A stretch of DNA of 64,000 bases from Setoptus koraiensis. Its lineage: Eukaryota > Animalia > Arthropoda. Location: contig CM106585.1 in NCBI GenBank assembly GCA_048013815.1, forward strand, positions 9,920,001 to 9,984,000, in the 5' to 3' direction. Under the pieces are notes generated by a model. That model saw nothing but the letters and a program-made list of their open reading frames with translations. It made no database searches and was not told the DNA's origin. Numbering within the stretch: the stretch's first letter is position 1; every line of letters begins with the position of its first letter. This document shows, one piece after another, positions 657-59,253 of this stretch. Both the position numbers and the translations under genes were made by a program.

Positions 657-660
<4 letters not shown>

Positions 661-732
<72 letters not shown>
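661..732. repeat. (GA)n microsatellite, about 36 units
   Basis: Uninterrupted GA dinucleotide run; it explains the spurious ERERER ORF 603..830. Confidence 0.98.
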
Positions 733-737
<5 letters not shown>

Positions 738-1843: not shown

Positions 1844-4490
1844 TCTGGACGCTGATGGAGGAGCGGGGTTAGATTTAGGCGGCGGCGGTGGTTGTGACGA
1901 GCTAATTTTGAAAGATTTGGAGAACTGACGAATTAATAAAATGGACGCTCGAATAAACGATGCGAATTCTAATCTACAAATAAAATAATAACTATATCCT
2001 AATAAAAACTAATAATGATAGCTAAATGGTCTTACCACAAATACCAGGCAGCGACGAAATAGTTGTTGAGATTGGATTTTCCGGGGTGAATCAAGCAATC
2101 TATTGACTGAACTCGACTGTATTGGATTGATTGTTGTACAACAAATATAGTCAATATTTTTGTTTCCAATATTATAATAGTGAGTTGATTAACCTTGGGC
2201 TTGACTCCTCGCGTTGCTTTCTACTCGAAGTAGCTGCAATTGTATTGCGTATAGTAAAGTTTCTTGTGTATTTTCGTGCGCGCGATCCCGAATGGTAACA
2301 TAGCTCTATTTCTAGCAACTATAGCTAGGGCGCATAGACTACATTTTGCGTGCCGAGTCAAGTTCATTTCAGTTGGGATCCCTACTGTATATGAGCGTTG
2401 GCAAGCTCGGCAAAAACGAGTTAGTATACAATCCTATTATTATCATCACATATTGTACAAGCCACTGCTACTGCTGTTGCCGTTGCCGGATGATAGGCAT
2501 TGAGCTTGCGCTCGCGCACTTACGCAAAATCTCACAGTCTCTTTGAGCCCTCTAAGTTGTTCTCGTGGAATACAAAAGGATAACGTGATAAAAAGATGCT
2601 CTCAGCATGCAGGCGATGGAAAAATCTGGCTTACTTTGTCTTGTTTTTAGTTAGTTTTGTATAGCTCGAACTGCTAGACAAATGAAAAAGAAACTTCCAT
2701 CTAGCCTCAACTCCACGGCGATATACCCTCTGTACAACTCGGTTTGGGCCATATGCCATCGACTTGAAAGCATGCCGGGTGTTGATAGAGATCCAAGTGT
2801 CTCAAAAAGAAAAAGATTACGTCCACGGACACTCATTTAACTCACATGATGCAGGTATGTCCGTCAGCAATCTAGCACTACCTAGGCCCTACCGTGTCTA
2901 GTCACCAGCATAGACCCACCACTTCGGCACGCAGGACACATAAGGCCAGTGATGGAGGCGCCGGATAGCGTCTGGATTTCAGACCCTGAAATCACATTTG
3001 AAAAAGCCTCCAATCCTGCCAGGCGGCGAATTTGCGCATGGCTACAGAAGGGGACCCTTCGTCAATCAATGATTGAAAATCTAAAGTATATCATTTAGTA
3101 CGACAACCTGATTTCTATGCAAGCTGATGAGGCTGACATTATCGTGTTCATCAAAGAGTTAGCTGCCAGCATCGGTAACTCATTAGACTAGCGAGGTGCG
3201 ATAACTAGGTAGTCGACTTGCTTCTCGCATCGCCCGATGAGAGCCCTTCCAAGGATTCGTCGAGATTGAGGTCCGATGTTCATGCCGTTAGTCTCTGGGC
3301 ATCGAGGAAACCGATGGCTATCGATTCTTTGGTTTCGACCTAGAGTTGCCATGTAAATTGTTGCAATCTAAAAGGCCCTTCTGGAAGTCAACACTACTCA
3401 GATACCTGTGCAATGTCTGGATCTGAGTCATTGAGCCCGGGATCAAGGACCAACAAAACAAACCTTCGATACAATCAATTTGTGAGAAAGCAAGATAGCG
3501 AGCACATTCACAACAATTTTTTCAAGACCATTTGTCAATTCGAACACAAGCAAGACACAATTTCCCGCATAATTCACATGGTCATAGAGGTGCAAACCGA
3601 ACAAAGATGACAGGTGAGTTTTCTGAGACAATGTCAAAGTCAGGAGGGAAATATCGCGGTGTTGCTAATAACGAAGACGGACAGTTCGTCTCCAAAAGTG
3701 GCTGTTGACAAACGGATGTATCGTTGTGTAGATCGCGACCATGATAGAGCCTTGTCACTATCGATACGTTGATCAGGTGATAAGAATCATGGGCGTGGGG
3801 TCGGTTAGTTATCGTTCACTGTCTAACTGCCGTTTGTGTCATATCAGTGCATAATATATTATTATGATATTATAATATTATTATAATAATGTTCACAATA
3901 CATCAGTGAATAGCATTCCGTCATTTGTTAAATATTTACACTATTATCAATCCGGCATATTATATCACATCTATTTTACAGAGAAAGAAACGTTTAGGCA
4001 GACACAGTACGGGCAGATACCGTCAGCTCAAATATTTTAGCGCGTATGCCGCCGTGCGTTTTTAACAAACAACAACATATGATTCCCAGAGATACTGTTA
4101 TATATTTTTATTATTATTATCATCATCTAACATAACAATCGTTTCATTTACATCAGTAACTATATATATATTGATTACATCGCCAGTCAATATCACAGCC
4201 GATAACACAAACACACACACTTGGTCCTTGCCCTCTCTACAAACGTTATTATTATATTTTATTATTATCATAATCAGTATTTGACGAATTGTGTCCATTC
4301 CGTCCATTCGATGACAACAGGTCAAACAATTCAAAACAAACAGACTATATTATAGAAAAATATAAATGCTTCATCGCTCATCGCCATTATCTACACCCTT
4401 ATGTCGGAGCTTTTCTCATAGGCATCTCGTCGTGCGACCAGAGTAGCATCAGACCATTTGAGACTCGTTGTTACTTGTTATTGTTACCAG

Positions 4491-7400
4491 GAGAACCAGA
4501 TCAAATGTTGGCTCAAAGTCATGATCATTTGAACAAATCCTATGCTATTCACTGTCATAATCTATTAAATCAATGTCTACACAATGAGAGATTATCAACG
4601 GATTGGAAATCGATTATAGAGTCAATCAGTAGGAGTATTGGCAGCACTGTTGTGTTGCCATTCAAGATCCATCCAACGAATCCCTCGGATCATATTAGCT
4701 ATTGTGTTCAAATTAAAACAATTCCAGGCGGAGAAAAAACAGATTCCACAGCATTCAATGGAGTGGTTATGAACAAGAATGTTTCGCATAGAAAAACACG
4801 CCAAGATATTCAAAATCCGCGTGTCTTATTATTTTCCACCTCTATTGTGTATGATGGCGACGAAAAGAAATTAACCTCACTCGAGACTGTCACAGCTAGA
4901 GAAAACGAGTACCTAGAGAATATATTGGCTAAGATTGTTTCGGCCAAGCCAGATATTGTCATAGTGGAACACGCCGTTGCACGTATAGCACAAGAGATAC
5001 TATTAGACAAGAACATAACATTGATATCAAATCTAAAACATTCCCTACTGATTAGAATAGCTAGATTCACACATGCTAAAATTATCAATTCACTGGATTC
5101 CATTTACAGTCAATCTAATGCCAATGGTAGACATGGTCAAGTTACAACAAACACCACCAAGGGTATGTCTGATGATCAAGGCAGATCACTTGAGGCATCT
5201 ATCGGTACATGTAAGCGATTCTATTGCAAAATGTTTGGCTCGAAAACATACGCCATATTGGACGGATGCGATGAAAAACTAGGTGCAACTGTGATATTAC
5301 GTGGCGGATGTTTGCCTGAATTGAAACGTGTGAAAAAATTATGTGCCTTTATGATTTTCTGTGATTATAATTGGCGTCTTGAACGCTCCATGCTAATAGA
5401 TCAATATGCCACATTATCCGAACAACAGGAACGACGACTAAATGAGTTGATTGAGACAGAAGATCTTAAACAAAACAAAGGAGTTGATCCAGAAAGAAGA
5501 TTGTCTCTCATAGATAAGAATGATTTATTAGTTGGCGATCAAGCAAACAAATACAAACCAATTGTTATAGAGGATAACTCGGATCCACTACGCTCCATGG
5601 ATGCCGAAATGTCTAGCAGTTTCAATTTATCAAGCAACTTTATGACAATCACTAATGATATAAGTGAACATAATAACAAGGCATTCGAATCAAACAAATA
5701 CAATTCCCACAATAGGGCCATCAATCAACAACATTGTGCTTTGGATTCAAAGAAACACGAAAAGCTCAGATTGTTTGAAAAAGCTCTGACAACAACAATA
5801 TTATCATGTTCGCCCAACATACATTATCCGCTTTCGCCAATAATGAAGGCCGATAATCATATAGAGAAATTGACCGAATATTTCAGAGGTCACCTATTAT
5901 GGTCTAAAAGATTACCTGAGATCCGAGGAGATCTCATTGTGGGAAACGAAATATACTCTCAACAGTCATTTGGTGAAAACATCGAAGATAGCTGTGATTC
6001 ACACTCGAAGAACAATAGAGCCTTTCATTACCAGAGTGATAAATGTGATACATCAAAGCATCCACTACTGGAGTACGATTTGAAGCAACCAATCAAAGAT
6101 TCGCCCCAAGCTTTGTCGTTGATCACAGACTTTAGAGCATTAGGTCCTTATCCGTTTGATAATTGTGGCAAACAAGTGGCATCGACCTTCAAAGAGCTCA
6201 AAAGCCATCTAGCCGACATTCAACGGGCTGCAAATAATCAATCAAACAATTCCAGTCAGACGGGTACTAGCAATCAGGAGGCTGCCGGTGCGGCTCATAA
6301 AAATCAAATTATCCAAGTTAAATCTTCTCTAACTTTGCCAATTGTAACTGGAGTGTTAAGTTCAAACAATATGAGTCCTGATGCAAACTCTATTAATGCG
6401 CAAAGTTTCTCCAATAATTTCGGGCCTCAAATATCTGGTGAGCCAATTGGTCAACCAAAAGATTGTCTAGATCCTTCAAACAATCAATTTTTGGCTGTTC
6501 TATTCAGTAGTTATTCCAGCTCATCGGCCACAGCTCCAGACTATTGCGTGAAACCTTCAACAATCAAAATGAATTACTATGGTCAAAATGATTTATCATT
6601 GGGCGATTTTCTAGACAGGTACTGTTTCGACATAAACTACCAATGCCCTTCAAGCGGCTGCACAACTTCTGTACTGCTACACACCAGAAGATTTGTACAT
6701 GGCGATGGTTGCATAATGATTGCCTTGCGTAGCTCGCCCTACCTGAGACCCGGCATTACAGATGACAATTCTATAATCACTTGGTCGTGGTGCCGAGATT
6801 GCAAATCGGCAACACCATACGTGAAATTGTCTGAAGACAGTAGAAATTTATCTTTTGCCAAATACTTGGAGTTGCGCTTTTATGCCCATTCCTATAGTAG
6901 ACAATCTACATTTGATGATTCGCAAAACAAACCCACCGATACACCTACAGATAACGATAGGGAAAACAACCCAAATGACCACCAAAAAGATCCCTTCCAA
7001 TCTTGCGACCAGAATCACCATCAGCCCTGCAAGCATTCGATACAGCGTGATCACTGTCAGTTTTTCGCTTCCAACAAAATAGTAGCCAGTTTTATTTATT
7101 TACAGGCGAGCCTGTACGAGATTGTATTGCCCTCTTTGAGTCCTTTAGCGCCAGATTCGCTGGATTTGGAGCCCGTGCCCGACGATAAACTACCGTTTAT
7201 CCGTGAGGGCGATTTTGGATCTTTGGTGTCGTTTGCGCTGAACAGCCATGAATATAGAGAACGATTGAATGATCTCAGTCAATCCAGTGTAATAGACAAT
7301 GGCACCAACAGCACTGGACAAGCAGTAGATCAAAAGTTGCCTTTGAGTCCGTCGGCTAGGCGCAAATTACAGAGCAGTATTCAATCGACCATAACGGATA

Positions 7401-8812
7401 GTTATGGCGGCCTATCTACGCCCGGCTCGAGTTCTATTGAACAAGGATTGGACAAGTTTGCTGTTAGTGATAAAGAAAACTCTGGCTCTGAATTTAATCT
7501 AACTCTTGAGAAAGACCCGTCCGGGTCCAACATAACAAAACAAGACTTATCTACTGGGTCATCCTCTTACGCTGCCACATCTACCACAGCATCCTCCACA
7601 AACATCGTACAATCTGGCAGTGCCCAAGATGCAAAGCGATCACATGGTAGCAGCAATAGACCGGATGTAGTGTCGAGTAGCTCAAAATTGTTGGACAACA
7701 ATAATATTGAGCTGCAACTTAATGATGGCAACGTAAGCCTCTATTGTGTTGTGTATTGCGCACTGGAATTTCAAAATATCCGATCATTGTTACTGAAACA
7801 TCCGAATGGCGAGGAACTGTATAAGCAATCTTTGTGGAATTGTATACCGTGGTCGGCACCTGGCGGCAAATCCGGCTCAACATTTTGCAAGACAAGCAAT
7901 GATAGATTCATAATGAAAGAGATGTCTAAACTGGAATTGCAATCATTTTTGGCCATAGCTAACAATTATTTTGACTACATACAAAAGTCCTACAGCGAGA
8001 AACAGCCTTGCTTGTTGTCTAGCATATTGGGTATCTACCGGATAGTTTACAAGAATAGCTCCACCAATGTCTCGTCAAAATTGTATTTTCTCGTTATGCA
8101 AAATCTATTCTATCAGCGACAAATAACCCAACGGTTCGATTTGAAGGGCTCCATGCGAAATCGTCTCGTCAACACAGCTGACCAGAGTAAAGGATCGTCC
8201 GATTTAGTATTAATGGACGAAAACCTGCTTAGGATTACTTGTGATCACCCGCTTTTTATTCGCGCCCATTCAAAAATAATTCTCAATCAGGCCATACACA
8301 ATGATGCCAGTTTCTTGACTTCGTTATCCGTCATGGACTACTCGTTGCTGGTTGGTATAGACAATGAAAAAAGTGAGTTAGTATTGGGCATAATCGACTA
8401 CGTGCGTCCGTTCACATGGGATAAAAAAATTGAGAGAGTTGTCAAGTCTGTGGGCAGCGCCAAGATGCCCACAATAATAGAGCCAGATTTGTATCGGATT
8501 AGATTTTGTGAGGCCATGGATAAATACTTTGAGTGTGTACCAGATCATTGGCATGATCTAATCAATTATTGTGACCAAGATGACACCACCACCACCACTC
8601 ATGATCATGTCGAAAACAATAGAGACAATGGTGACAATAGAGCGGGTTCAATTATCACCAACGGCACCTCAACTGTGGCTACAACAACCACCACTCAAGC
8701 TGCACCGGAGTCTATATGCTCGCTTGTTTATAATCAATATACTCCCACAATTCCTGTGGTGAGTGGTGGTGCTAGAAACAATAACAGTGGTGCAACTTTA
8801 AAGTCCAATTGA
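4491..8812 (+). CDS. PIKFYVE: 1-phosphatidylinositol-3-phosphate 5-kinase (PIKfyve/Fab1): CCT-like domain, Cys-rich CCR and PIPK domain in a single 4.3-kb exon
   Basis: CCT-like motifs VQIKTIPGG, GVVMNKNVSHRK, NPRVLLF and LGATVILRGG. CCR LGDFLDRYCF...CPSSGC...HTRRFVHGDGCI...SWCRDCK...LSFAKYLELRF. Kinase GGKSGSTFCKT...RFIMKEM, FDLKGSMRNR, DENL, MDYSLLVGID, GIIDYVRPFTWDK. Acceptor ttgttaccag|GA at 4490 and first in-exon ATG at 4505; the ORF-track GTG start at 4289 is probably intronic. Confidence 0.97.
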
Positions 8813-9373
8813 TTGATCCAATATTGTTGCGAATAGCCAGCGAACGTGATACGGAGAAATACCATTCCATTGTCCAGCTAATTCATTCACCAACATTGAC
8901 ATTTGCAAGCAAAACGATAATTATCACCGATTATCTCGTGTTTATTCACAAATAGTCTAACCACCATTGTGTCAACATCACCATTTTATAGATACTTATG
9001 TGCTGTCGACTATTCAATAAACTGTCATCCGATGAGTTATTTTTTCCGGGTTTTTGAGTCAAGCCATCATCATAATTTGTCGTAATTATTGTCTCAAATA
9101 TTGTGTGTCTTTTTCAAATATTTTATTTCGAATTATGTGATATTCGAAATGAAATTATGCATGAGAGCGCCTGGTTGCCCATAGTAACGCGTATCAGCAA
9201 GCGTCTGTTGCGTTGTTGTCGACTGACCAATTGCTGTTCGGAGCTACAGAACGCCGATTGCCACCAGCCTGTTTTATTATTTATCTATTTTATTACTTTA
9301 TTAGATTGGTTGCTTTTATATCTTTCCATCCAGACAAGTACGAAATTTTATTTTGGAAGCAACATTTTTCAAA

Positions 9374-12300
9374 ATGGACGATTTTCATTCGACCCTCAGG
9401 CGGCTGCTAGACCGCACGGATTCGGCACCGTTCACAAAGAGCAAGTCTGATTTGGTCGATTCCGACGAGATTGCAATAATTAGCGAGCCAACTAGCGCAA
9501 GTATCCTCAGTCATCCAGACAGAGTGAGCACGTCAATTGGTAGCGATGGATGGTCCATGCAGAATTCAGTTGAGAATGCAGCCAACAAAGGATTCGTTGA
9601 AGGGCAGGTTTCGCTGCAAGAGAAATTCTTCGAGCAACGCAAGGACAGGAAGGTGGATTTGTTGAGGCGACTCTTAGAGGAGGACGATGCGAAGAGTGCA
9701 TCAGTTGAGCCCGTAGTTTTGGCCAAGGACGATGACAACGGACAAAAAGAAGCTCCGTTTGGGGCGACCGACACAAAAGAAACATCTTCTTCCCGGGGAT
9801 CACCGTCAGCGTCAGAAGAACCAAATGTAGACGATTTTCCCCATGGAAATGGATCGAAAATGAGCGAACCGAAACAATTCATTTCAAGTCAAATATCTAA
9901 ATTGGATAGTGTGGAATTCTTCTTCCGAAATGATGCAACGCTATCAGTGCGAAAACAATCAAGAGACAACAGCAATATTGAGTCGGCAGCGATGGGCGAA
10001 TCTCTGGCGGCGCTTGACCAAGTTTTGGACGAATTGGGACGCAAAAACAAGATTGAATTGAGGTCCCATATGAAAGTTAATCATTATAATATCCATTCGC
10101 CTGCTCAAGACGAAGCACTCTATTTATGTTATAACAGTGGTGCCGATCCAACAAACAGTGACAGTCCATTTAAAGTTTTTGCCCTGTCCAACGACAACAT
10201 AGAACAAGCAGCAAACCAACAAGAAAGTAATGAAGTGCTCAAGTTAAGATCGTCCCTCCAACACTCAAAAGTCTACCATAACGACAATTATGCAAATGAC
10301 AAAAATCTAGCCAGGCTGGTGAATAGATTGATAAGAGAAGGCAATCATGAAAAAATGCTCAATATTGACAATAATGCTAGCGAGCTCAAGTTAATCGACA
10401 GACATTGTTCAGATCAAACAGCCATCGGTTATCACAAGTCGATGTATGCAAACAATGACTCTTCAGCCACAGACATGGATAACTTGATATCTAAGAAGGC
10501 TCTCGAATATGTGGATCTATCGCGTGTCTTCGGCCTCATTCGAGAGCCAGTGGCTCGCTGGCATGCTGATGGTCGTGTAAAAGGGCGCACTAGATTGATC
10601 AATATGACAGACGGCAACAGTCTTAAACTAACCGAAACGAAATTCAATGGCCACAACAAAAGAAAGGACAGTATCACGTTGAATGTAAACAGATTGACGT
10701 TTGACAATCATCCATTAATGATTGAGGAGAGCAGACTCACCAATGAGCTGATCCGTATGAAAGAATCGATTGTTTGTCCGGATAATCATAATAAGATAAC
10801 TGTTGATGACATTGTGCGCTCATCTACTAATTATATTCAACACATTGATGGAATCGAGTCGCTCAGCAAGAACCACAATAATAATGTGACAAACATTATA
10901 GAGAGACACAATGAACTCATCACGGACACGTTCAATTGTATCGCAAAATATGTGCTTGAGACAAACACATTGAGAGAGCATAGAATGAGGGCTGTTGAGA
11001 AGGCAAAATTGTTAGCTAGAGTTAGACACGAGCAACAGTTTGTGTCGACCTCAATCAGGCTCCTGGAAGCACAACCTTTGACGCGATTCGAAAATGAAAA
11101 CGACCAGAAGAAAATGACTCACCTGTTAAATTTGTTCAATAATTTAATTGATGCCTTGTCGAAGGCGAAATCTCTTTTCGAAAACTCCCAAGAACGAATC
11201 GATGATAGCTCAGACGGTAATAACGTAGGTGCAATAGTGCACAACATTGACTCTGGAATGAAGACGATAGAAAAGCTGCTGCCGGACGAGGCAGAGCGGA
11301 CGGCGGAAAGTGAAACAGACAAGCAACAGTTGCTGTTACTGGACGACGGTCGGTTGGTTGGCGAGTCGAGACTGTTGGACAAGGTGTTTTGTTTTATAGA
11401 CGACAATATGAACGGCAACAACAACAACAACAGTTATATAACTGGCGACGATGACGCAATTTTGAGCGAGGAGGAGAAAAATCGACGCAAAAGAATCAGA
11501 TCAGAGAGATACAAGCTCCGCTTGGACATATTTGTGGTGGGCAATGGAACAACGACAAAGTTGTTAGCTTATTCCACTTCTTTTCAGCCGATGAACTTGA
11601 ATTTTTGCATTGATTTCAGCGACTCCGCAAGTTGCAGTTGTGAAATACCTTTGTTGTTTGCCAATCAAAGAATTGCGCTCAGTCTAATTAGGGCCACTAC
11701 CAGCAATAACGGTGTTAACTTAAGCACCAGATGGCAAGAAACAGAGGAGACACTGTTGGTAAACATGGACAGCTTGACAGAATCACTGAGCAAATATTCA
11801 AACGACGATGGCTGGACCAATTTGCCATTTCGTTACACCAAGAACCGAGCCAGTCAGCGAGAGGCAGCTCGCGACAATTCAAGCGCACTGAACAGTCTCA
11901 ATTTGTTTGTCAATAGACTGTTTTCATCAATGCAACAAACGATCAATTGGGGCTCGAGCAGCGCTAGCACTAATAATAGTAACAGTGGTTCGGATGAGAG
12001 CGGCGCAGCAACCGGAAGTGAACAATTGGAAAAAGTGTTTTCGGGCCAAGTGCGCATGTGTTACTCGGACAATTCACATGTGGGCATTTGGAGCGGCAAG
12101 GGCCAATCTAACCAAGTGTACAATCAATTCATACAACAACTGCATCAACGAGCCCTGGACGACAATTTGATCAATAGGAGCGGAAATTCCATTTTCTGGC
12201 TGGCTAAAATGCCCCAATTTCAACTGGATGCCATGAAGGAACAATTGTTGCATGCCGACACGATAAAATTGGTTGAATTGATCATTGAACAATGGCAGAA

Positions 12301-15300
12301 ATTTAAAACTGCAACAAATCACAGTGATTCGTATATCGAGAGCATTGTGAACAATTATTTGGAGATTATCAACGAAGAGAGAACGCCACGAATAGATGCA
12401 TTTCTACTGTCACAATTGAGAGACTTCGAAATGTTCGTCGGTCACACGTCACAGTCATCATTGGCGGATAACAATTATTTGGCCAAGCAGCGCAAAAGGA
12501 ATAAATTGTTGAAATTGAGATGGCACAACAAGCTGGATCACGCAATCCGATTCAATCACAGAGAACTTGACATTTTTTCTGCCACTGTATCTGGCGGACA
12601 GAGCGCCCTTTCCGGTTTGGGCCAAGCCAGTGCCAGTCGGGCCGAATTAGAGTCCAGTGGCCAGTTGGAGCACAATAGTGATGACGCAACCAAAGCGGCA
12701 CAACAAGAGCAGCAGCAGCAGCCGCTTTTGGCCGAAATAAAATGTCGCAAGGCGCTCAATTACATCAGACAATTGGAATGTCAACTGGAGCGATGTTTAG
12801 AGGCGAACAATAGACAATTGTTGGCTCAGAAACCGATAAGATATAGCGAACTAATTAGAGAGCAAAATCTCACTGATTCATTGAAGAGATTGCGCATATC
12901 AATGGTGCAACTAATTATGGTTGCCCTGGCGCCCATGAGAGTCATCTTTAATCAGCGCTCCGTGCACAGGCCCCTGTTGCCCCAGAGACGTTATCGTGGG
13001 GGCTCGCACTACAACAGAAAACTGCTCGATTGGGGTCACATCAACGAGTCGTTTTTGTCCGACCGAAGCGCTTCCGTGTTCGAAATGACCGCAGCTACTG
13101 GGCACACGCATGACGGCCCGTTGGGCAATTATCCGCGCCGATTAGAATCGTCGCTGACGGGCCGACGTATGGATACGTCGGCGCGGCGCCTCATAGTGAC
13201 CATAATGAACGCCCGAAATGTGCCCATGAGGGCGCAGTATTTGCAGCGTAACCCGCCCGTGCCCTATTACGGCGATTACCCGTACGACAGACTGAGCCCG
13301 AGGCAACAGGTGATCACATCGTCCATTGTCAATGGTGCAAACAAACAGCAGCACCAATCGAGCGACCATTACCCGTTGCTGCCCATGGGCGCGTCTGCGG
13401 TGGCCAACGGTGGCGTCCATCACGACATAAGCGAGCTCGACGTGACCCCGTGCAGTTACGTCGAGGTGGCGCTGCAGAAGAATTCACGCCAGACCAACCT
13501 CGTTGTTGGAGTGAATCCCACTTGGAACGAGACAATCGCCTTGCCAATAATATCCGGCAGTTGCCAGCAATTGCAGGCAGAAAATGACGGCCTGACGAGA
13601 CGGGACAATCAACATCGAGCAAGCAACGGTTTGCAAAAGAAATCGTCGTCACTAGCCTATCTCGTTGCCAGCGACGACACCAGCAACAACCACTCGATCA
13701 AGGGCGCCCCAATGGGGCCCATAAGACACGACGAGCACGTGTACATAAACCTGTACGATTATCAGCTGATCAATGTGTCAGCTGGCTTCGATGGCGCTCA
13801 TCACCTGACGGGGGCAGCCGCTGCGGGGCCCGTCAGTGCAGCAGCGGCATCTCAGTTGCACAAACAGGAAGTTGGCGTTGGTCCCCAGCATGTCGTGTCT
13901 AGCCAGCAGAACGTGGAGAGGCGCTTGCTGGGCTCCATTCGTTTGCCGCTGACCACGCTGTATATGAATGGCAAAATTGAGGGCACGTTCGCTCTGAAGC
14001 AGCCACTGATGCTGCCCGTGGATCAGCATCCGGCCATGCAGTTACTTGTGAGCAATGCCAACAAACAGCCAGCGGCTGTCCACAACAACGACCGCGGGCC
14101 CCTGACCGGAAATTCGTCGGGCCTGATGCCCGTGGCGACCAATCATCAGCTTATGACAATCAGTCAGCAGCAGTTTGGGCGCGCCAGTGTCGCTGACACT
14201 TGCTGCTATTTGACCTTCTTCATCACCATTGAGCCGCGCGTTTGTTTGCCGCCAACAATTGTCGAGTATCCCTTCGACACAATGGAGAGCAAACAAATGA
14301 TGCAATACGTGCGCAACTGGCAATGCTCGTTCACTTTGTATACGGTGCTCAGTAATTGGTCGTCTGAGCCCGCAGTTAACAACAACAACAACAACAAGTT
14401 GTCAGCAACGAGAGGCAAACAACATTTCGGGCAGTCAGTGTCGGGCAGTGGTCAGTTGTCGCGGCCAACGGCGGCCCAGGTGAAATGGACGAAACCCGGC
14501 AACGTCAGGGGCAACATCTATCGGCGCAACATCAGAACGATGGCCATCAACGGTGCTGGTCGGTATGCGCTGCTGACGCGCTTTATCAAGCCCATGAAAC
14601 CGCCAGAAAGTCTGACAAAACAAATTGAACGCAACGGTCAGCATAGTGAGCACCATTTGCTGAATGAAAAATTGACAATTATGGCCCGATTGAGCCGCTT
14701 CGTTTCGTTGCTGTGCCCAATTCGCGAGGGCTCCTTCTCTAACAGATCCATAGGATCCAATGTGCTGTTTGATTGCGGCCAGCTGATCAACAAATCGCTG
14801 GGCGGCATAGAGGAGAAGGCCATCCTATTGTGCAATTATTTTCTCTACCTGGGCAAATGTTGTGCTCTGCTGCTGGGCACGGCCATACCGGACGGCAAAA
14901 CCGCTTACGTAATAGTGTGGGAGGTTGCCGAAGAAACAACTGGTGGCCTCTCGGTGACCACAAACGCAACTCTAAACAGTGACAGTTCGGCAACTACCCA
15001 ACTTCCGGTTCGTGATGCAACTTCGTCCGCTTCTTCTGAGCCGGCCACAAGCAACAATCCGTCGTCTTTAGTGATGTCACCCGGCGTGACAGCAACCGAT
15101 CTTTTGTTACTGTTGCCCACTAGAATACACTCCAGACAGGTGTACCTGTGGAGCGTGACCGATGGCAAAGTTTATGCGGCCGGCCAGCAGCATCAACCGT
15201 TGACGAGCGTCGGCTGTATAGTTACCAGTGACAACATTTATGCAAATATCCAATCAGAGGACCATCCGAACAAGATTCACTATGACCTGAGAGAGGCCAC

Positions 15301-16018
15301 TAAATGGTGTCCATTGTTCACTGGAGGTGGCGCCATCAGAACCAAAACGGCAACCATCAACACGGCTATATTTGGTGCGAGAAGCTCGCCAGCGCCCAGA
15401 CAAACAATGACTGGCAATGAGGCTTTTCAAGACACCAACACAGGTTATTCGTTGCAGCCGCCCGATGACAGTTTGAATTATTCTTTTGTCGAGCCGGATT
15501 ATTGTCGTTTGCTGCACAATCTCATTGATGGCACAATAAAGGATTGTTTGATTAAATGGCGCAAGAATGCGCCCACCTTCTTCAATAGGTCAGTGGCCTC
15601 CATCATAAGCGATTGGTTGGTGCACTTCGAGAGCGACCCCTATCTCGTTGGCCATTTGTTCGAGGGCACACAAACAACGAACAGTTCCCTGTTTTATCAG
15701 CACAATTACAACAATCTGCACAACAATGAGCCTCTAAACGGACAAGCCAGCCAGCATAACATGAGCCAACACAGTATAAGCCAACAGTTGGCCCCAATAG
15801 CCAGCAAATATAAGATTATCGGTTCACCGATGAACTTCAGCTACACGAGAATGGACAATATTGTTCAGTTGCTGTACTCGACCGGCATTCATCACCAGAG
15901 TTCGAGCAACAAGTCACAACAATTCTCCGTGTCCGTTTACATAAAACCCTATCCCGCGGGCCTCATATCCGTTTGGTTGTGCGTGCTGGCCCTGGTGCCC
16001 CGCCAGGCGCCCGGCTAG
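9374..16018 (+). CDS. CC2D2A: Coiled-coil and C2 domain-containing protein 2A (MKS6, ciliary transition zone), intronless, about 2214 aa
   Basis: C2 elements RRLIVTIMNARNVPMR, PCSYVEVALQ, GVNPTWNETIALP, VYINLYD and RRLLGSIRLPLTTLY. C-terminal conserved blocks GGIEEKAILLCNYFLYLGK...LLLGTAIPDGKTAYV, KIIGSPMNFSY and VYIKPYPAGLISVW. First ATG at 9374. Confidence 0.93.
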   Translation: MDDFHSTLRRLLDRTDSAPFTKSKSDLVDSDEIAIISEPTSASILSHPDRVSTSIGSDGWSMQNSVENAANKGFVEGQVSLQEKFFEQRKDRKVDLLRRLLEEDDAKSASVEPVVLAKDDDNGQKEAPFGATDTKETSSSRGSPSASEEPNVDDFPHGNGSKMSEPKQFISSQISKLDSVEFFFRNDATLSVRKQSRDNSNIESAAMGESLAALDQVLDELGRKNKIELRSHMKVNHYNIHSPAQDEALYLCYNSGADPTNSDSPFKVFALSNDNIEQAANQQESNEVLKLRSSLQHSKVYHNDNYANDKNLARLVNRLIREGNHEKMLNIDNNASELKLIDRHCSDQTAIGYHKSMYANNDSSATDMDNLISKKALEYVDLSRVFGLIREPVARWHADGRVKGRTRLINMTDGNSLKLTETKFNGHNKRKDSITLNVNRLTFDNHPLMIEESRLTNELIRMKESIVCPDNHNKITVDDIVRSSTNYIQHIDGIESLSKNHNNNVTNIIERHNELITDTFNCIAKYVLETNTLREHRMRAVEKAKLLARVRHEQQFVSTSIRLLEAQPLTRFENENDQKKMTHLLNLFNNLIDALSKAKSLFENSQERIDDSSDGNNVGAIVHNIDSGMKTIEKLLPDEAERTAESETDKQQLLLLDDGRLVGESRLLDKVFCFIDDNMNGNNNNNSYITGDDDAILSEEEKNRRKRIRSERYKLRLDIFVVGNGTTTKLLAYSTSFQPMNLNFCIDFSDSASCSCEIPLLFANQRIALSLIRATTSNNGVNLSTRWQETEETLLVNMDSLTESLSKYSNDDGWTNLPFRYTKNRASQREAARDNSSALNSLNLFVNRLFSSMQQTINWGSSSASTNNSNSGSDESGAATGSEQLEKVFSGQVRMCYSDNSHVGIWSGKGQSNQVYNQFIQQLHQRALDDNLINRSGNSIFWLAKMPQFQLDAMKEQLLHADTIKLVELIIEQWQKFKTATNHSDSYIESIVNNYLEIINEERTPRIDAFLLSQLRDFEMFVGHTSQSSLADNNYLAKQRKRNKLLKLRWHNKLDHAIRFNHRELDIFSATVSGGQSALSGLGQASASRAELESSGQLEHNSDDATKAAQQEQQQQPLLAEIKCRKALNYIRQLECQLERCLEANNRQLLAQKPIRYSELIREQNLTDSLKRLRISMVQLIMVALAPMRVIFNQRSVHRPLLPQRRYRGGSHYNRKLLDWGHINESFLSDRSASVFEMTAATGHTHDGPLGNYPRRLESSLTGRRMDTSARRLIVTIMNARNVPMRAQYLQRNPPVPYYGDYPYDRLSPRQQVITSSIVNGANKQQHQSSDHYPLLPMGASAVANGGVHHDISELDVTPCSYVEVALQKNSRQTNLVVGVNPTWNETIALPIISGSCQQLQAENDGLTRRDNQHRASNGLQKKSSSLAYLVASDDTSNNHSIKGAPMGPIRHDEHVYINLYDYQLINVSAGFDGAHHLTGAAAAGPVSAAAASQLHKQEVGVGPQHVVSSQQNVERRLLGSIRLPLTTLYMNGKIEGTFALKQPLMLPVDQHPAMQLLVSNANKQPAAVHNNDRGPLTGNSSGLMPVATNHQLMTISQQQFGRASVADTCCYLTFFITIEPRVCLPPTIVEYPFDTMESKQMMQYVRNWQCSFTLYTVLSNWSSEPAVNNNNNNKLSATRGKQHFGQSVSGSGQLSRPTAAQVKWTKPGNVRGNIYRRNIRTMAINGAGRYALLTRFIKPMKPPESLTKQIERNGQHSEHHLLNEKLTIMARLSRFVSLLCPIREGSFSNRSIGSNVLFDCGQLINKSLGGIEEKAILLCNYFLYLGKCCALLLGTAIPDGKTAYVIVWEVAEETTGGLSVTTNATLNSDSSATTQLPVRDATSSASSEPATSNNPSSLVMSPGVTATDLLLLLPTRIHSRQVYLWSVTDGKVYAAGQQHQPLTSVGCIVTSDNIYANIQSEDHPNKIHYDLREATKWCPLFTGGGAIRTKTATINTAIFGARSSPAPRQTMTGNEAFQDTNTGYSLQPPDDSLNYSFVEPDYCRLLHNLIDGTIKDCLIKWRKNAPTFFNRSVASIISDWLVHFESDPYLVGHLFEGTQTTNSSLFYQHNYNNLHNNEPLNGQASQHNMSQHSISQQLAPIASKYKIIGSPMNFSYTRMDNIVQLLYSTGIHHQSSSNKSQQFSVSVYIKPYPAGLISVWLCVLALVPRQAPG

Positions 16019-54400: not shown

Positions 54401-54972
54401 ATCACTATCTTGAGTTGAGTGTTTGAATATAGCGCGAGAAAACTATTTACAGAGTCGGTCGCAAGGTGCCGCTGTGCACACTTTGGCAGTTCACAACTGA
54501 TGCCAGCGACACTGCCAGAGACAGAATCGCCGCCGCATCGGACAACGATGCAACTGCACCATTGCACCACTGCACCGTCACCACGGCGAATCGTCCGTTG
54601 GCTATCGCCATCTGCAGTGATGGAATGCAATTTGCACACATCGACCACAAATTGTGCGTCTGTTTGTGTGTCACCGCAACACATCTATTCAAGTGGGACT
54701 GTGCGTCTGTGCGTTTGTCACTGACGGAAGTTGCCGCTCATCAATTTCGAAAAATGGTGCACAGGGTTGTGCACCAACGGTATGTGTGGTGCACTTAACC
54801 GGCACGCTTGTGCAGGATGCATCCGTTGCCGGCTTGTGCGGTGCGCTGTGCAGCATTGTGTGTAAACGTATATAAACTAAACGTATTTGTATATAATGAC
54901 GGATCGCAGTTGAGACGTCAGAAACATTAATATTATTTTATTTAGAAATAGAAACAATTTTTCAAATTCAAA

Positions 54973-55642
54973 ATGATCATCTTCAAGGATATTATCACCG
55001 GTGACGAAATGTTCACTGACTCGTCCAAAATGAAGGTAGTGGACGATTGTCTCTACGAGGTCACCTGTCGATATGTCACAAGAAAACAGGGCGACTTTGT
55101 GTTGGAAGGTGCGAATCCGTCCGCCGAGGGCGAGGACGGTGACGAAGGAGCCGACGATTCCCAAGTCCAGAGCGGATTGGACCTGGTGCTTAATCAACGT
55201 CTCATGGAGACCCACTTCGACAAGAAAAGCTTCACGCCCTACATCAAGGCATACTCCAAAGCGTAAGTAATACAACACTCTTCTAACACTTGTGCTCATC
55301 ATTCTTTCATTACTATGACTCTTTCACAATGATGCTAACCAATCTTCATATTTCATTGATATTAAATTACAATTAATTATACCATATCGTGTCATCATTA
55401 GTCTCGAGGCTAAATGGAAAGAAATGGGCAAATCCGAGGATGAGATAAAAGAGGCCAAAGACAGGATGATCCAAGCTGTCAAGTTGATACTTCCCAAGGT
55501 GAAGGATTGTAAATTCTACACAGGCGAAAGCGGCAACCCGGATGGCATGGTAGCATTGTTGGAGTACAGAGAAGATGCCAACGGTGAAGAAACGCCACTC
55601 ATGCTCTTCATCAAGCCCGGACTTGATGCCGAAAAAGTTTAA
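54973..55642 (+). CDS. TCTP: Translationally controlled tumour protein (176 aa); exons 54973-55262 and 55402-55642
   Basis: MIIFKDIITGDEMFTDS, EGANPSAE, SGLDLVLNQRL, FYTGESGNPDGMVALLEY, LFIKPGLDAEKV*. Donor GC|gtaagt 55263, acceptor cattag|T 55401; spliced length 531 nt. Confidence 0.98.
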
Positions 55643-55661
55643 CACTTAGCACTGTTTAGCA

Positions 55662-55679
55662 ATTAAAGAATGATTTATT
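55662..55679. terminator. Bidirectional polyadenylation element: ATTAAA (+) and AATAAA (-) 6 nt apart; duplicated at 58209-58226
   Basis: attaaagaatgatttatt lies 20 nt after the TCTP stop; an identical 18-mer lies 23 nt past the RRS1 stop (minus strand). Function is inferred. Confidence 0.6.
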
Positions 55680-55769
55680 GATCATATGTACAAGTCTTTT
55701 ATTTCCTATTAGCACGCTCCTTCTTTTCTTCGTTCTTACTTGCAAATTAATCAACATTTGGATCAGCCT
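55662..55769 (-). pseudogene. Decayed duplicate of the RRS1 3' end and 3' UTR
   Basis: Aligns in direct orientation to 58209-58373 with two internal deletions (about 15 and about 41 nt). Translates ADPNVD*FASKNEEKKER versus ADPNVDYFAKKNEEKKER in RRS1. Confidence 0.88.
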
Positions 55770-55780
55770 TATAGGTCAGC

Positions 55781-56692
55781 TCAATAATCTAGTCTTAAAA
55801 CAGGAAGTGCCGGTGTATATCGATTGTACACAAGCGCAGCTCGAGTAGTGGTTGTTGTAGCCACAGTTGAGGTGCCGTTGGTGATAATTGAACCCGCTCT
55901 ATTGTCACCATTGTCTCTATTGTTTTCGACATGATCATGAGTGGTGGTGGTGGTGTCATCTTGGTCACAATAATTGATTAGATCATGCCAATGATCTGGT
56001 ACACACTCAAAGTATTTATCCATGGCCTCACAAAATCTAATCCGATACAAATCTGGCTCTATTATTGTGGGCATCTTGGCGCTGCCCACAGACTTGACAA
56101 CTCTCTCAATTTTTTTATCCCATGTGAACGGACGCACGTAGTCGATTATGCCCAATACTAACTCACTTTTTTCATTGTCTATACCAACCAGCAACGAGTA
56201 GTCCATGACGGATAACGAAGTCAAGAAACTGGCATCATTGTGTATGGCCTGATTGAGAATTATTTTTGAATGGGCGCGAATAAAAAGCGGGTGATCACAA
56301 GTAATCCTAAGCAGGTTTTCGTCCATTAATACTAAATCGGACGATCTTTTACTATGGTCAGCTGTGTTGACGAGACGATTTCGCATTGAGCCCTTCAAAT
56401 CGAACCGTTGGATTATTTGTCGCTGATAGAAGAGATTTTGCATAACGAGAAAATACAATTTTGACGAGACATTTGTAGAGCAGTTTTGCATGTAGTCAAA
56501 AGTTTGCGAATGATCAAATGTAGATTGCCTACTATAGGAATGGGCATAGAAGCGCAACTCCAAGTATTTGGCAAAAGATAAGTTTCTACTGTATTCAGAC
56601 AATCTCACGTATGGTGTTGCCGATTTGCAACCTCGACACCACGACCAAGTGATTTTAGAATTGTCATCTGTAACGCCGGGTCTCAGGTAGGG
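55781..56692 (-). pseudogene. Inverted partial PIKfyve duplicate, fragment 2 (CCR tail fused to PIPK C-lobe); reading frame still open
   Basis: Matches 6737-6926, 7969-7984, 8054-8704 and 8723-8759. Net deletions of 1041, 69 and 18 nt are all in frame. It lacks the GGKSGS loop and the RFIMK lysine. New ATG (ATA to ATG) in DYMQN. Confidence 0.9.
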
Positions 56693-56859
56693 ACGATTCC
56701 TTCATAGGACAGTATGGCGCAAGAAGAAAGAATGACATGCAAACTATACTATCTACAGGTGTTGCAACCTTTGTTTAATAATATATATTTAAAATATTTC
56801 TGAAAACTCAATGTTAGAGAATAAATTTATTGTATTTCTAAGCAAATTTACAATCATTC

Positions 56860-57324
56860 TCAAAATCGTCTTTCAAAAATCTGTTGCATCATGAATCTTA
56901 CGAAGTCCGAGCGAAGGCTAGGCAATATGTACGTTTGATAAAGATTTTTCAACCAGGAAAAGATTACATCAGTCTCTTCGCGAATAGCTGGTAGCCAGTG
57001 AAGTGAAAAGTTGCCACCACAGAGGCCGAAACATAGTGTGATGTTTGGTGAATTTGTGTGCATGGCATCTTGACGTTTCACTCTGCCGAAGCTAGCTTTG
57101 TTGAGACCCTGGGCCAAGACATCTCCGGATGATTTAACGGCGTCCAAAGGATTAACGGATGCTTGCTGTAGGGATGGCACGTCCATTTTCGGTGCTTCAA
57201 TTGCTGCGGATCGGCGTCCTCGGTTAAACTGGGGCCTGCTCTGACATGACACTTGATGCTCCGATAGAGTAATGGCCATCACTACTACTGCTAACAAGAC
57301 AATGATCGACAATAGTTTAGACAT
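56860..57324 (-). CDS. Secreted 154-aa prepropeptide-like protein (candidate neuropeptide or effector precursor)
   Basis: ATG with signal peptide MSKLLSIIVLLAVVVMAITLSEHQVSC, then QSRPQFNR-G-RR, an RVKR furin-type site and a C-terminal segment with two Cys. TATAAAA about 180 nt upstream (57509-57503, minus) and AATAAA 29 nt after the stop (56831-56826). Confidence 0.7.
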   Translation of the reverse strand: MSKLLSIIVLLAVVVMAITLSEHQVSCQSRPQFNRGRRSAAIEAPKMDVPSLQQASVNPLDAVKSSGDVLAQGLNKASFGRVKRQDAMHTNSPNITLCFGLCGGNFSLHWLPAIREETDVIFSWLKNLYQTYILPSLRSDFVRFMMQQIFERRF

Positions 57325-57549
57325 TATGAAGATGTTGTTGGCTGTACTTACTTCAACTGTGATTTAACTTTGATTGATTCTGATCGGAGTGTGTGTGAGG
57401 ATGTCAAGCGACGACGATTTGTAAGAAATAATTAAGATATGTTGATCAAATTTCGGACATCTCAACATCATCCGATAAGATCAACAAATAACTGTTTGCC
57501 CGTTTTATAGCAAGCGCTGTAACTATAAGAGTTTCGAATCGAAACAATG

Positions 57550-57737
57550 ATTTGTGTTTGCTTATTCGATTATCAGCTCGATGTATCATCTTCATGGTGC
57601 GTGATAGTTTTGGCCAGTTGCAAACAATTATCACATTCACAAGGTAACCTAGTTAGTCTGCATTTGCAATTGGCCAAAGCTAACACGAACCATGGAGATG
57701 ATACATTGAGCTGATGATCGGAGTAATGAACACAAAT
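57550..57737 (+). ncRNA. Long hairpin (75-bp stem, 38-nt loop); candidate hpRNA or miRNA-like precursor
   Basis: Arms 57550-57624 and 57663-57737 pair without gaps: 62 Watson-Crick, 8 G:U and 5 mismatches on the plus strand. Only 1 mismatch would be G:U on the minus strand. Confidence 0.6.
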
Positions 57738-57884
57738 AGCAGCTACTCTGGTTAAAACTACCCAACTCAAGAGCCTGAAAATATCAGAATTTGCGATCCA
57801 GTTTCTTCTGAAACCATAAGAGGAAAATTCAAAGGTTACAGATTCAAGCATGGTTTCCTTCAGACAATGATCCTGCAACTCTTT

Positions 57885-58190
57885 AGGCAATCATTACACA
57901 ACCATCGCCATGTACAAATCTTCTGGTGTGTAACAGTACAGAAGTTGTGCAGCCGCTTGAAGGGCATTAGTAATTTATATCGAAACAGCACCTGTCTAGA
58001 AAGTTGCCCAATGATGAATCATTTTGACCATAGTAATTCATTTTGATTGTTGAAGGTTTCACGCAATATTCTGGAGCTGTGGCCGATGAGCTGGAATAAC
58101 TACTGAATAGAACAGCCAAAAATTGATTGTTTGCAGAATCTAGACAATCTTTTGGTTGACCAATAGGCTCACTAGATATTTGAGGCCCGA
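57885..58190 (-). pseudogene. Inverted partial PIKfyve duplicate, fragment 1 (CCR N-part), with a nonsense mutation
   Basis: Matches 6420-6725 with about 15 substitutions in 306 nt, including CAA to TAA at 57969-57967. Confidence 0.92.
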
Positions 58191-58248
58191 GGATCAATGA
58201 TTAGAATGATTAAAGAATGATTTATTGATTATATGTACAAGAATCGGT

Positions 58249-58857
58249 CTATCTGATCTTTTGTTTCTTAGTAGCTGAGGAGATATTGCGTAGTTTTTGA
58301 AATTCATTCTTGGCAACACGTTCCTTCTTTTCTTCGTTCTTCTTTGCGAAATAATCAACATTTGGATCGGCCTGATCAGGCACCTCAATGATCCAGTCTT
58401 TCTGCTCTTCATTTTGGGCACGTTTGTAACCATGCCTGGGCACCCATTTGTTTGTGACATCGTCCCAAACAAGCCTCTCATTTCTGTCTTTGGTTTTGTT
58501 CTTTGTGATGCCTTTCTGTTTGGCAAACCTCTCCCATTTGGTAGGCTCTTTCGGTTTGGGGATATGTCTAGAACGGGGTAGTATAGTGGTGCCAGGTGGT
58601 AGTTTAACAACGTTGAGGCCATCCACCATGGTGGTCTCTAATTGGCATAAATCATTTATAATGGCTTGTGCCCCATTTCTGGCGATCTTTTCCAGATAAT
58701 CCTCCCTGGCCTTGCCAGCTTTGGGCATTGCTAGATTGTCGCCGTCCCATACGGTTAAATTTCCTAGATCCAACTGTAGGCATCTTTCAATTGTAACTTT
58801 TTCATCTATTTTTTTCTGTTCAGAGCTGATATGCTCTAGAACCTTTGAAATATCCAT
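58249..58857 (-). CDS. RRS1: Ribosome biogenesis regulatory protein RRS1, short 202-aa form, intronless
   Basis: LDLGNLTVWD, ARNGAQAIINDL, KLPPGTTILPR, PTKWERFAKQKGI, LVWDDVTNKWVPRHGYKR, WIIEVPDQADP, KKERVAKNEFQKLRN. Confidence 0.95.
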   Translation of the reverse strand: MDISKVLEHISSEQKKIDEKVTIERCLQLDLGNLTVWDGDNLAMPKAGKAREDYLEKIARNGAQAIINDLCQLETTMVDGLNVVKLPPGTTILPRSRHIPKPKEPTKWERFAKQKGITKNKTKDRNERLVWDDVTNKWVPRHGYKRAQNEEQKDWIIEVPDQADPNVDYFAKKNEEKKERVAKNEFQKLRNISSATKKQKIR

Positions 58858-59253
58858 CTCTTGTTGCTGTCGGATGTGTCACAATAATATTAATGATGGA
58901 TGATAATAATGAATGCAAATTAAATATCCTAACAATGTGTAGATCGCGTGCGAATGTTTTCATTTTCATGCTGAATGTAAACACAGTCAAGACGAAACGA
59001 AATGAGAATGCGTGAGCACGTTTTTCCAATGACGCGAGTGCTGCGATTCGCGCCAATTACAAACGTCGCGATATTTCAAATATCATTTGAAATGTGTTTG
59101 ACACTCCAGTTACAATTGGCAGAGTTAGAGAAGATTTAAAACGCTACAGACGGCACATAGAAGTAAAATTTGAAGCAAGCTTGCCTAGCCCATCTCAGTT
59201 AGTTAGAGCGAAACAATCACCAATTTGCACAATTTCAAGCACAACAATCGCGT

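Follow-up and report, generated by a model that had tools for sequence, protein, structure and literature searches.

A mosaic of PIKfyve, RRS1 and secreted-peptide gene sequence around the RRS1 gene of Setoptus koraiensis looks like a repair scar rather than a working regulator

How did a 2.5-kb insertion assembled from pieces of other genes come to lie where the 3' ends of TCTP and the essential gene RRS1 meet, and does it have a regulatory role? The locus belongs to Setoptus koraiensis (assembly GCA_048013815.1, contig CM106585.1, positions 9,920,001-9,984,000, forward strand); "the window" is the whole of this 64,000-nt stretch, to which all coordinates refer. A preliminary description had reported inverted PIKfyve pieces, a 1,192-bp insert, a hairpin and a duplicated RRS1 3' end, and self-BLAST reproduced all of these. 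The mosaic is larger than first described, with a fourth PIKfyve piece, in-frame deletions surrounding a small island, a conversion tract and a multi-copy insert. It is best explained as a DNA-level, lineage-specific structure situated at the 3' overlap of convergent TCTP and RRS1.

Read along the minus strand, the locus runs from the promoter of the next gene through PIKfyve 6318-6359, all of RRS1 from promoter to poly(A) element and an 18-nt filler into PIKfyve 6420-6725, the 1.19-kb insert (hereafter S) and PIKfyve 6737-6926, 7969-7986 and 8058-8757; after the letters TTT come a duplicate of the last 192 nt of RRS1, poly(A) element included, and TCTP. By self-BLAST, the RRS1 locus, S and four or five PIKfyve segments are joined at eight junctions or more. 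Among themselves the PIKfyve pieces are collinear, and they are inverted relative to their parent, which lies 48 kb away. The copied parent segment (6318-8757, plus strand) falls inside a single long exon (ORF 4289-8812) of a gene whose Cpn60_TCP1 and PIP5K domains (Pfam) identify it as PIKfyve/Fab1, and is itself free of introns.

Two of these pieces flank S directly: P2 (57885-58190, minus strand; parent 6420-6725, 95.1% identity) and P3 (56503-56692, minus strand; parent 6737-6926, 94.7% identity). The 11-nt parental gap between them was verified again, whereas the earlier account of PIKfyve continuing unbroken from 6737 has to be corrected: about 1.1 kb of coding sequence (parent 6927-7968 and 7987-8057) is absent from the copy, and both deletions are in frame. 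Because the parent ORF is continuous from 4289 to 8812, the missing part is coding sequence and not an intron. Between the two deletions lies an 18-nt island (56484-56501, minus strand; parent 7969-7986) that is identical at 17 of 18 positions and has the correct strand, order and frame (E ~0.006, a rescaled value for a search limited to the deleted interval). P4 (55800-56481, minus strand; parent 8058-8757) covers the kinase-domain C-lobe and the tail; self-BLAST aligns 55836-56481 with parent 8703-8058 at 98.6%, and the last 35 nt contain 8 mismatches and adjoin an 18-nt deletion. A 275-codon ORF (55781-56608, minus strand) with a Pfam PIP5K match stays open across both deletion junctions, which is either a coincidence of roughly 1 in 9 or a hint of function.

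The fourth piece, P1 (59098-59139, minus strand; parent 6318-6359), matches its parent at 40 of 42 positions (E ~1e-11). It occupies part of the intergenic region common to RRS1 and the next gene, on the upstream side of the RRS1 promoter, with conserved promoter blocks on both sides, and is collinear with P2 in the same orientation across a 60-nt parental gap. The whole RRS1 gene occupies this 60-nt gap, and S occupies the 11-nt gap. Since P1 sits beyond RRS1, the PIKfyve copy is interleaved with an entire functional gene as well as with the insert.

At the RRS1 end, the intact gene (58209-58857, minus strand; CDS 58249-58857; Pfam RRS1) terminates in a poly(A) element, u (58209-58241). Its protein is 80% identical to RRS1 of L001, the relative compared at the DNA level; read depth shows a single copy in the genome, and an RNA contig covers it. 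The adjoining filler (58191-58208, minus strand), read from the sequence, repeats a neighbouring AATCATT motif and may be a slippage product or a templated patch. At the other end, TCTP (54974-55642, plus strand; exons 54974-55262 and 55402-55642) is defined by its ORF, by homology to L001 TCTP and by a spliced contig of the RNA run X7 that skips the GT..AG intron 55263-55401. Beyond its coding end lies a second copy of the element, u' (55662-55694), which is bidirectional, with ATTAAA on the plus strand and AATAAA on the minus strand. The two copies agree at 32 of 33 positions (97%, self-BLAST) while their flanks diverge by 5-15%, and the TCTP RNA contig in X7 ends at 55694, exactly at the proximal copy. 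The duplicated terminator of the earlier proposal is borne out.

Next to u' lies a decayed relic of the C-terminal coding end of RRS1 (55695-55796, minus strand), recognized by alignment to RRS1 and interrupted by in-frame stops. Together, relic and u' form a duplicate of 58209-58400. Self-BLAST matches 58317-58400 with 55713-55796 at 84.5%, and the alignment places deletions of 42 and 17 nt in the relic; the relic carries the derived state at 8-10 of the 13 differing positions, and these cluster beside the junction. The relic has single depth in reads, i.e., it is present once.

The insert S (56693-57884, minus strand) is a 1,192-bp unit with a TATA box (57503-57509), an ORF of 154 aa with a signal peptide (56860-57324) and an AATAAA signal (56826-56831). 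This agrees with the captured secreted gene of the preliminary description, except that the gene is not unique: reads cover 57044-57847 at 4-14x and 56642-56909 at 3-5x, but 56910-57043 at 1x. Contigs of paralogues with other flanks stop at 56692 and 57881, and variant contigs and loose ends occur at the block borders. By this depth pattern, S belongs to a multi-copy family of secreted-peptide genes whose members would have the promoter, 5' UTR and signal-peptide region as well as the 3' UTR in common and differ in the mature region. A word-index search, an exhaustive HMMER search and Atlas gave no homologues of the 154-aa ORF, look-up gave no exact record for the S protein or RRS1, and metagenomes scanned for a 27-nt word of the high-copy portion of S gave zero matches. 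Sequence inspection showed no terminal inverted repeat (TIR) or target-site duplication (TSD) at the ends of S and no poly(A), as previously noted. Upstream of the ORF, S contains an imperfect hairpin with a 75-bp stem (57550-57737; arms 57550-57624 and 57663-57737) that includes 9 G:U pairs. Its depth of 5-14x shows that it is repeated across the genome, and Rfam returned only miRNA-like matches below threshold.

Is the structure real and peculiar to this lineage? We used three DNA runs from different studies (X1, X2 and X3, one of which may be the window's own source), assembled into short k-mer contigs. In all three, the junctions at 55799, 56482-56502, 56692, 57884 and 58190 are bridged by contigs at single-copy depth; misassembly was rejected on this ground. 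An apparent "joint" leading from 56692 to 57885 with 11 extra letters is the parent gene aligned on the copy, as its remaining letters equal the parent's. The PIKfyve pieces have double read depth, i.e., exactly two copies. Single depth on RRS1 together with double depth on P4 means that the cassette as a whole is unique and not a transposon. As for synteny with related species, RRS1 and TCTP are convergent and directly adjacent in two relatives, 280-291 bp apart, and the cassette is absent from L001. Therefore, the cassette is lineage-specific.

The ages of the pieces bear directly on their origin. Differences from the parent amount to 4.8% in P1, 4.9% in P2, 5.3% in P3 and 6.1% in the flanks of P4, and such near-equal divergence points to one age. 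In all, copy and parent show 36 differences. An age gap between the 98.6% piece and the 95% ones was considered and rejected: the high value is due to a tract of 499 bp identical to the parent (55848-56346, minus strand), on either side of which divergence is ~5-6%. The tract has zero differences, against 7 in the next 135 nt. At 5% divergence the chance of 499 identical nucleotides is 0.95^499 = 8e-12, and a 499-nt contig matching the tract occurs at double depth in X1. The tract is a recent gene conversion, from or with the parent, in which transfer may have gone in either direction. Duplicated non-processed pseudogenes exchange sequence with their parents by ectopic gene conversion, CYP21A1P/CYP21A2 being an example. 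Like such pseudogenes, the mite copy is inverted and partial, lies on the same chromosome as its parent and has a sharp 499-bp identity tract amid ~5% divergence; unlike them, it is fragmented and interleaved with other genes. The PIKfyve pieces are most readily classed as pseudogenic: P2 has two in-frame stops, and the pairwise dN/dS of the copy and its parent (~0.4) is what a neutral lineage paired with a constrained one should give.

We lean, by slightly more than an even balance, towards a single error-prone template-switch repair event (MMBIR/FoSTeS or multi-invasion SDSA) that built the locus, which then decayed. A nascent strand would have switched back and forth among the RRS1 locus, the PIKfyve exon and a member of the S family, each return to a template it had left falling slightly further along, until a final return to the RRS1 locus 192 nt back duplicated the 3' end. 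As the bidirectional poly(A) element had been doubled, both essential flanking genes retained a terminator, and selection since then may have preserved both copies, while the PIKfyve material would have decayed as a pseudogene, later partly homogenised by the 499-bp conversion. The placement of RRS1 in a 60-nt gap, just as S lies in an 11-nt gap, favours one event with alternating templates, and the locus has the hallmark of MMBIR/FoSTeS, at least two template switches joining separate nearby templates. Around 55797-55799, differences reach ~22% over 62 nt, compared with ~5% elsewhere, and the first 27 nt of the relic hold six relic-derived or unpolarised changes. The cluster, which has no evident counterpart at any other junction, is in keeping with synthesis that is prone to errors close to breakpoints (PMC4937565). 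The junctions themselves have 0-3 nt of homology or overlap, or short fillers (the 18-nt one with its AATCATT repeat), and are equally compatible with end joining. That such minimal microhomology fits end joining as well as MMBIR counts against the single event.

The preliminary description had instead proposed serial templated insertion, with the insert landing in a PIKfyve copy already in place. Its templated, DNA-level origin, by neither retrotransposition nor a transposon, stands, and the serial order is only one option. A series of independent events, in which the inverted PIKfyve copy and the RRS1 3' duplication came first and were later followed by S (taken up at a break that cost 11 nt), the internal deletions and a small patch upstream of RRS1, is possible but on balance doubtful. 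The PIKfyve pieces around S are contiguous but for 11 nt, as insertion into an existing copy would leave them; S comes from a multi-copy and evidently duplicating family, and streamlined eriophyoid genomes are thought prone to DNA loss, which makes the deletions plausible (PMC7738191). However, RRS1 sits likewise in a 60-nt gap of the same copy, so that a serial history must account for a 42-nt PIKfyve continuation, 60 nt upstream in the parent, past the sole functional RRS1. It also has to reconcile equal divergence of all four pieces, and needs several more steps than a single event. More speculatively, and with little probability in our view, recurrent alternating-template synthesis, possibly special to the lineage, could make inverted interleaved copies; it would have re-housed RRS1 in a pseudogene and placed a secreted-peptide gene, and some copies, this one among them, might feed antisense or hairpin RNA into a non-canonical small-RNA pathway.

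Does the mosaic act on gene expression? Pseudogene-derived endo-siRNA loci occur in mouse oocytes and hairpin-RNA loci in Drosophila. The preliminary description suggested something similar here, namely that plus-strand read-through from TCTP, or transcription on the hairpin side, would make an antisense RNA against PIKfyve and RRS1, to be cut into small RNAs. As in the known systems, an inverted pseudogene copy potentially antisense to its parent has a long hairpin nearby; the copy also lies directly 3' of highly expressed TCTP, the hairpin is more stable on the plus strand (-112 kcal/mol, vs -88 on the minus strand), and 499 bp are identical to the parent mRNA. The RNA data are one run, X7, shown to be RNA by splicing and analysed as assembled contigs, which drop rare transcripts. 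Against read-through, the TCTP RNA contig stops at 55694 and depth falls from ~76 on TCTP to 0.28 just beyond its poly(A) site. Two copy-specific stretches, 56374-56641 and 57848-58249, have a depth of 0, and values stay between 0 and 0.8 over 57580-57847, where most of the hairpin lies. Within this one run and its contigs we found nothing cassette-specific, including no antisense or hairpin transcript. Nor did this S copy show expression in the X7 contigs: depth is 0 over copy-specific 56910-57043, with 289 over the paralogue block 57069-57135. In addition, no more than 20% of the sampled words occur in the four runs of the X7 study (X7-X10), Rfam gives no match above threshold and the hairpin itself is multi-copy. 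A published eriophyoid genome has no clear R2D2 and AGO2 homologues, so canonical siRNA factors appear to be missing and the pathway would be absent or non-canonical in that eriophyoid (PMC7738191). The X7 profile gives read-through no support, and we consider a functional antisense or small-RNA locus very unlikely.

Still further from credible is a new protein-coding gene, in which the 275-codon ORF would encode a truncated PIKfyve kinase C-lobe, transcribed by read-through from the S gene and ending at the relic poly(A) signal. The open frame with its PIP5K match and the few non-synonymous changes in P4 speak for it. However, the apparent conservation of P4 is mostly due to the conversion tract, the ORF lacks the kinase N-lobe, X7 has no RNA over 56374-56641 and an open frame is expected by chance at ~5% divergence. 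Capture of gene fragments by a Helitron or Pack-type transposon, or an assembly artefact, can scarcely be upheld either: pieces of several genes in one orientation, a hairpin and a multi-copy S would suit it, but TIRs, TSD, Helitron ends and poly(A) are all absent, as are defined termini with several copies of a whole element; the PIKfyve pieces occur exactly twice and the RRS1 relic once, and contigs of the three DNA runs, which come from separate studies, cross each junction at single-copy depth.

A retrocopy was also rejected, as the copy has no A-run and ends at parent 8757, with the parent stop codon at 8810-8812, and the missing 1.1 kb is exon. It resembles a processed pseudogene in being a partial coding-region copy elsewhere in the genome; a poly(A) tail, an mRNA-matching 3' end and a short TSD are all lacking. 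Instead, it stops 55 nt before the parent stop codon without 3' UTR, has a duplication of 135-192 nt on its flanks where a retrocopy would have a short TSD, and alternates with stretches of genomic DNA, promoters included.

The closest counterparts of a single template-switch event are complex templated insertions, which reports on human germline complex chromosomal insertions and on cancer templated insertions ascribe to FoSTeS/MMBIR (PMC5120786, PMC8421209). The likenesses are several segments copied from nearby templates in inverted orientation, and forward skips plus one backward jump that leaves a duplication; the 0-3 nt of homology or short fillers, and the extra point mutations near one breakpoint, are possible further parallels. 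In contrast to those cases, the mite mosaic is a fixed evolutionary event on a scale of 20 nt to 1.2 kb, its alternation is so regular that essential RRS1 is embedded in a copied pseudogene, and its mechanism is deduced from the scar alone.

Overall, this is a genuine structure with the look of a repair scar rather than of a working regulator, and a role as an siRNA source is at present without support (one RNA run). As a natural multi-switch templated rearrangement it is clean and fully resolved, and the essential gene survives through a bidirectional terminator that was probably duplicated along with it. An insertion of 2.5 kb can thus be tolerated by convergent genes whose 3' ends overlap. 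The conversion tract ties a dead copy to the kinase domain of essential PIKfyve and would offer pseudogene mutations a possible path into the parent. Should further mosaics of this sort exist in the genome, the locus may serve as a type specimen for asking whether one repair pathway shapes the tiny genomes of eriophyoid mites.

The mosaic between TCTP and RRS1 is a real structure, of a known kind. Self-BLAST of the window recovered each element listed in the preliminary description, namely the inverted PIKfyve copies, the hairpin and the doubled RRS1 3' end. The parent of the copies (ORF 4289-8812) is PIKfyve/Fab1, a single uninterrupted exon of 1,507 codons with Cpn60_TCP1 and PIP5K domains (Pfam); directly 3' of it lies a 2,221-codon single ORF (window 9353-16018), likewise intron-free over many kb. 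Published eriophyoid genomes are ~32 Mb with few introns (PMC7738191). At window 603-830, a (GAG/AGA)n microsatellite is readable as a long Arg-Glu repeat ORF.

Inverted relative to the parent are P2 (57885-58190, parent 6725-6420; 95.1% identity), P3 (56503-56692, parent 6926-6737; 94.7%) and the main match of P4 (55836-56481, parent 8703-8058; 98.6%), beyond which the copy extends to parent 8757 across an 18-nt deletion. A copy running from 6737 onward, as first described, is present but not continuous: parent 6927-7968 and 7987-8057 are absent, and between the two gaps stands an 18-nt island (56484-56501) that matches parent 7969-7986 at 17 of 18 sites, with order, strand and frame all correct. 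The net losses, 1,041 and 69 nt, are both in frame and leave a 275-codon ORF (55781-56608) that retains a PIP5K match. A fourth piece, P1 (59098-59139, parent 6318-6359, inverted like the others; 40/42 identical, E ~1e-11), lies upstream of intact RRS1 in the intergenic region common to the next gene, flanked on the RRS1 side by promoter blocks conserved with a relative. On the minus strand the pieces are collinear (parent 6318-6359, 6420-6725, 6737-6926, 7969-7986 and 8058-8757). The 60-nt parent gap between P1 and P2 holds the entire RRS1 gene unit (59097-58209) and an 18-nt filler (58191-58208) repeating the adjoining AATCATT motif; in the same manner, the 11-nt gap between P2 and P3 holds S, the 1,192-bp insert (56693-57884).

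Contigs from three DNA runs (X1, X2 and X3) and one RNA run were aligned to 54900-58900; they are k-mer read assemblies, not single long molecules, and one run may be the source of the genome assembly. At single-copy depth they bridge the junction of P4 with the decayed RRS1 relic (X1, X2, X3), the deletion junction (X2, 56444-56579), P3/S (X1 and X3, 56550-56726), S/P2 (X1, X2, X3, up to 57928) and P2/RRS1 (2.9-3.2-kb contigs from 58104 in X1, X2, X3). Misassembly is thus set aside by the agreement, at contig level, of three DNA runs from different studies. A joint 56692>57885, considered as an S-less allele, was rejected: it carries the parent's own 11 nt and its remaining letters are exactly parental, so it represents the parent gene and not an empty site.

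By synteny the cassette is specific to this lineage, in keeping with the earlier view of it as a new locus. RRS1, a 202-aa ORF (58249-58857; Pfam), has its nearest named counterpart in the eriophyoid mite Fragariocoptes setiger (57% identity), which marks the genome as belonging to an eriophyoid-like mite. A relative's locus (L001, RRS1 80% identical) is collinear with window 62844-54967; its RRS1 and TCTP are convergent and 291 bp apart, and the interval between them contains no match to the cassette. The spacing is 280 bp on a second relative's contig, and the stop codons are 2.6 kb apart in the window. In three mite-like contigs from JGI and ENA metagenomes (RRS1 56% identical to that of the window), RRS1 is followed by a 1,141-aa gene, not TCTP; RRS1-TCTP adjacency is therefore not universal in these mites.

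Divergence from the parent is 4.8% for P1 (2 differences in 42 nt), 4.9% for P2 (15 in 306), 5.3% for P3 (10 in 190) and 6.1% for the P4 flanks (9 in 147), while the P4 core at 55848-56346 shows 0 differences in 499 nt (0%). The chance of such an identical run at 5% divergence is ~8e-12, and in X1 the core forms a separate contig at double depth; we interpret the core as a tract of recent gene conversion. The two identity classes previously distinguished among the pieces would then reduce to a single age and one conversion. In P2, which carries two stops, and P3, pairwise dN/dS is ~0.4 and pS 0.09-0.14, as would be expected from one neutral and one constrained lineage.

On its minus strand, S carries a TATA box (57503-57509), a 154-codon ORF with a signal peptide (56860-57324) and an AATAAA (56826-56831). 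Homology searches detected no homologue of the protein and, as originally noted, neither end of S shows a TIR, TSD or poly(A). Two stretches, 56642-56909 and 57044-57847, have 3-14x the single-copy depth, and 56910-57043 is at single-copy depth; variant contigs are many, and those with other flanks stop at 56692 and 57881. Raised depth, variant contigs and foreign flanks together make S one member of a multi-copy family, in which promoter, 5' UTR, signal region and 3' UTR are conserved and the mature part is divergent. Depth in the RNA run is 289 on a paralogue block (57069-57135), ~78 on TCTP and 0 on the portion of S specific to this copy. This 67-nt ORF block is ~92% common with the depth-289 transcript and has identical foreign flanks in 4/4 runs; the paralogue is a patchwork with respect to S, and its expression in the RNA data is very high. 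A 1,022-nt RNA contig matches only window 56692-56836 (145 nt, 6 differences) before 876 nt of unrelated sequence, and the family's 3' UTR block belongs to a longer transcript at another locus. The imperfect hairpin (57550-57737) lies inside S, upstream of the ORF, and folds at -112 kcal/mol on the plus versus -88 on the minus strand, with 9 G:U pairs; its arm differences are mostly transitions that yield G:U pairs on the plus strand, leaving ~3 unpaired positions. It reached no Rfam threshold, and its 5-14x depth marks it as a repeated element rather than a unique structured-RNA gene.

The RRS1 3' end is doubled both in its coding part (58317-58400 and 55713-55796; 84.5%, self-BLAST) and in a 33-nt poly(A) element (58209-58241 and 55662-55694; 97%, 32/33 identical, self-BLAST) that reads ATTAAA on the plus and AATAAA on the minus strand. 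Each copy of this element appears to be used and to have been conserved. It is apparently a shared bidirectional terminator of the convergent TCTP and RRS1; the pre-insertion spacing of their stop codons would be only ~60 nt, versus 280-291 nt in relatives. Between the relic and the intact copy, 13 of 84 sites differ; L001 as outgroup assigns 8-10 of these changes to the relic, and most of them fall in the 27 nt nearest the junction. There, P4 ends with 8 mismatches in its last 35 nt, followed by three T and the relic from 55796; relic changes and P4 tail mismatches form one mutation cluster around 55797-55799. Mutation clusters have been reported near replicative-rearrangement breakpoints (PMC4937565).

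A single event of error-prone replicative repair fits best; in it, synthesis would have switched template repeatedly, moving among the RRS1 locus, an S-family member and the PIKfyve exon, which lies 48 kb off. Arguing for this are the collinearity and equal age of the PIKfyve pieces, the small forward skips at template re-entry (60, 11, 1,042 and 71 nt), the one re-entry that falls back, by 192 nt, and so doubles the end of RRS1, the short fillers, and the mutation cluster at one junction. Serial events, in the order first proposed, could still have built the mosaic, but P1, which sits beyond the sole RRS1 gene, is hard to explain in this way.

The RNA run, X7, comes from a study whose four runs (X7-X10) contain at most 20% of the sampled words; X7, the one of the four that was compared with the locus, was shown to be RNA by splicing. 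Antisense read-through from TCTP, as previously suggested, finds no support in this one RNA run: the spliced TCTP contig stops at 55694, the end of the proximal poly(A) element copy, and depth falls from ~76 on TCTP to 0.28 just past the poly(A) site. Neither 56374-56641 nor 57848-58249 has any coverage (depth 0), and the hairpin bins stay between 0 and 0.8. The depth of 18.6 on P4 falls within the stretch nearly identical to the parent and is thus attributable to parent mRNA. A published eriophyoid genome is without clear R2D2 and AGO2 homologues (PMC7738191). Based on the contigs and the single RNA run, the most probable status of the cassette, the retained terminators excepted, is that of an inert scar.
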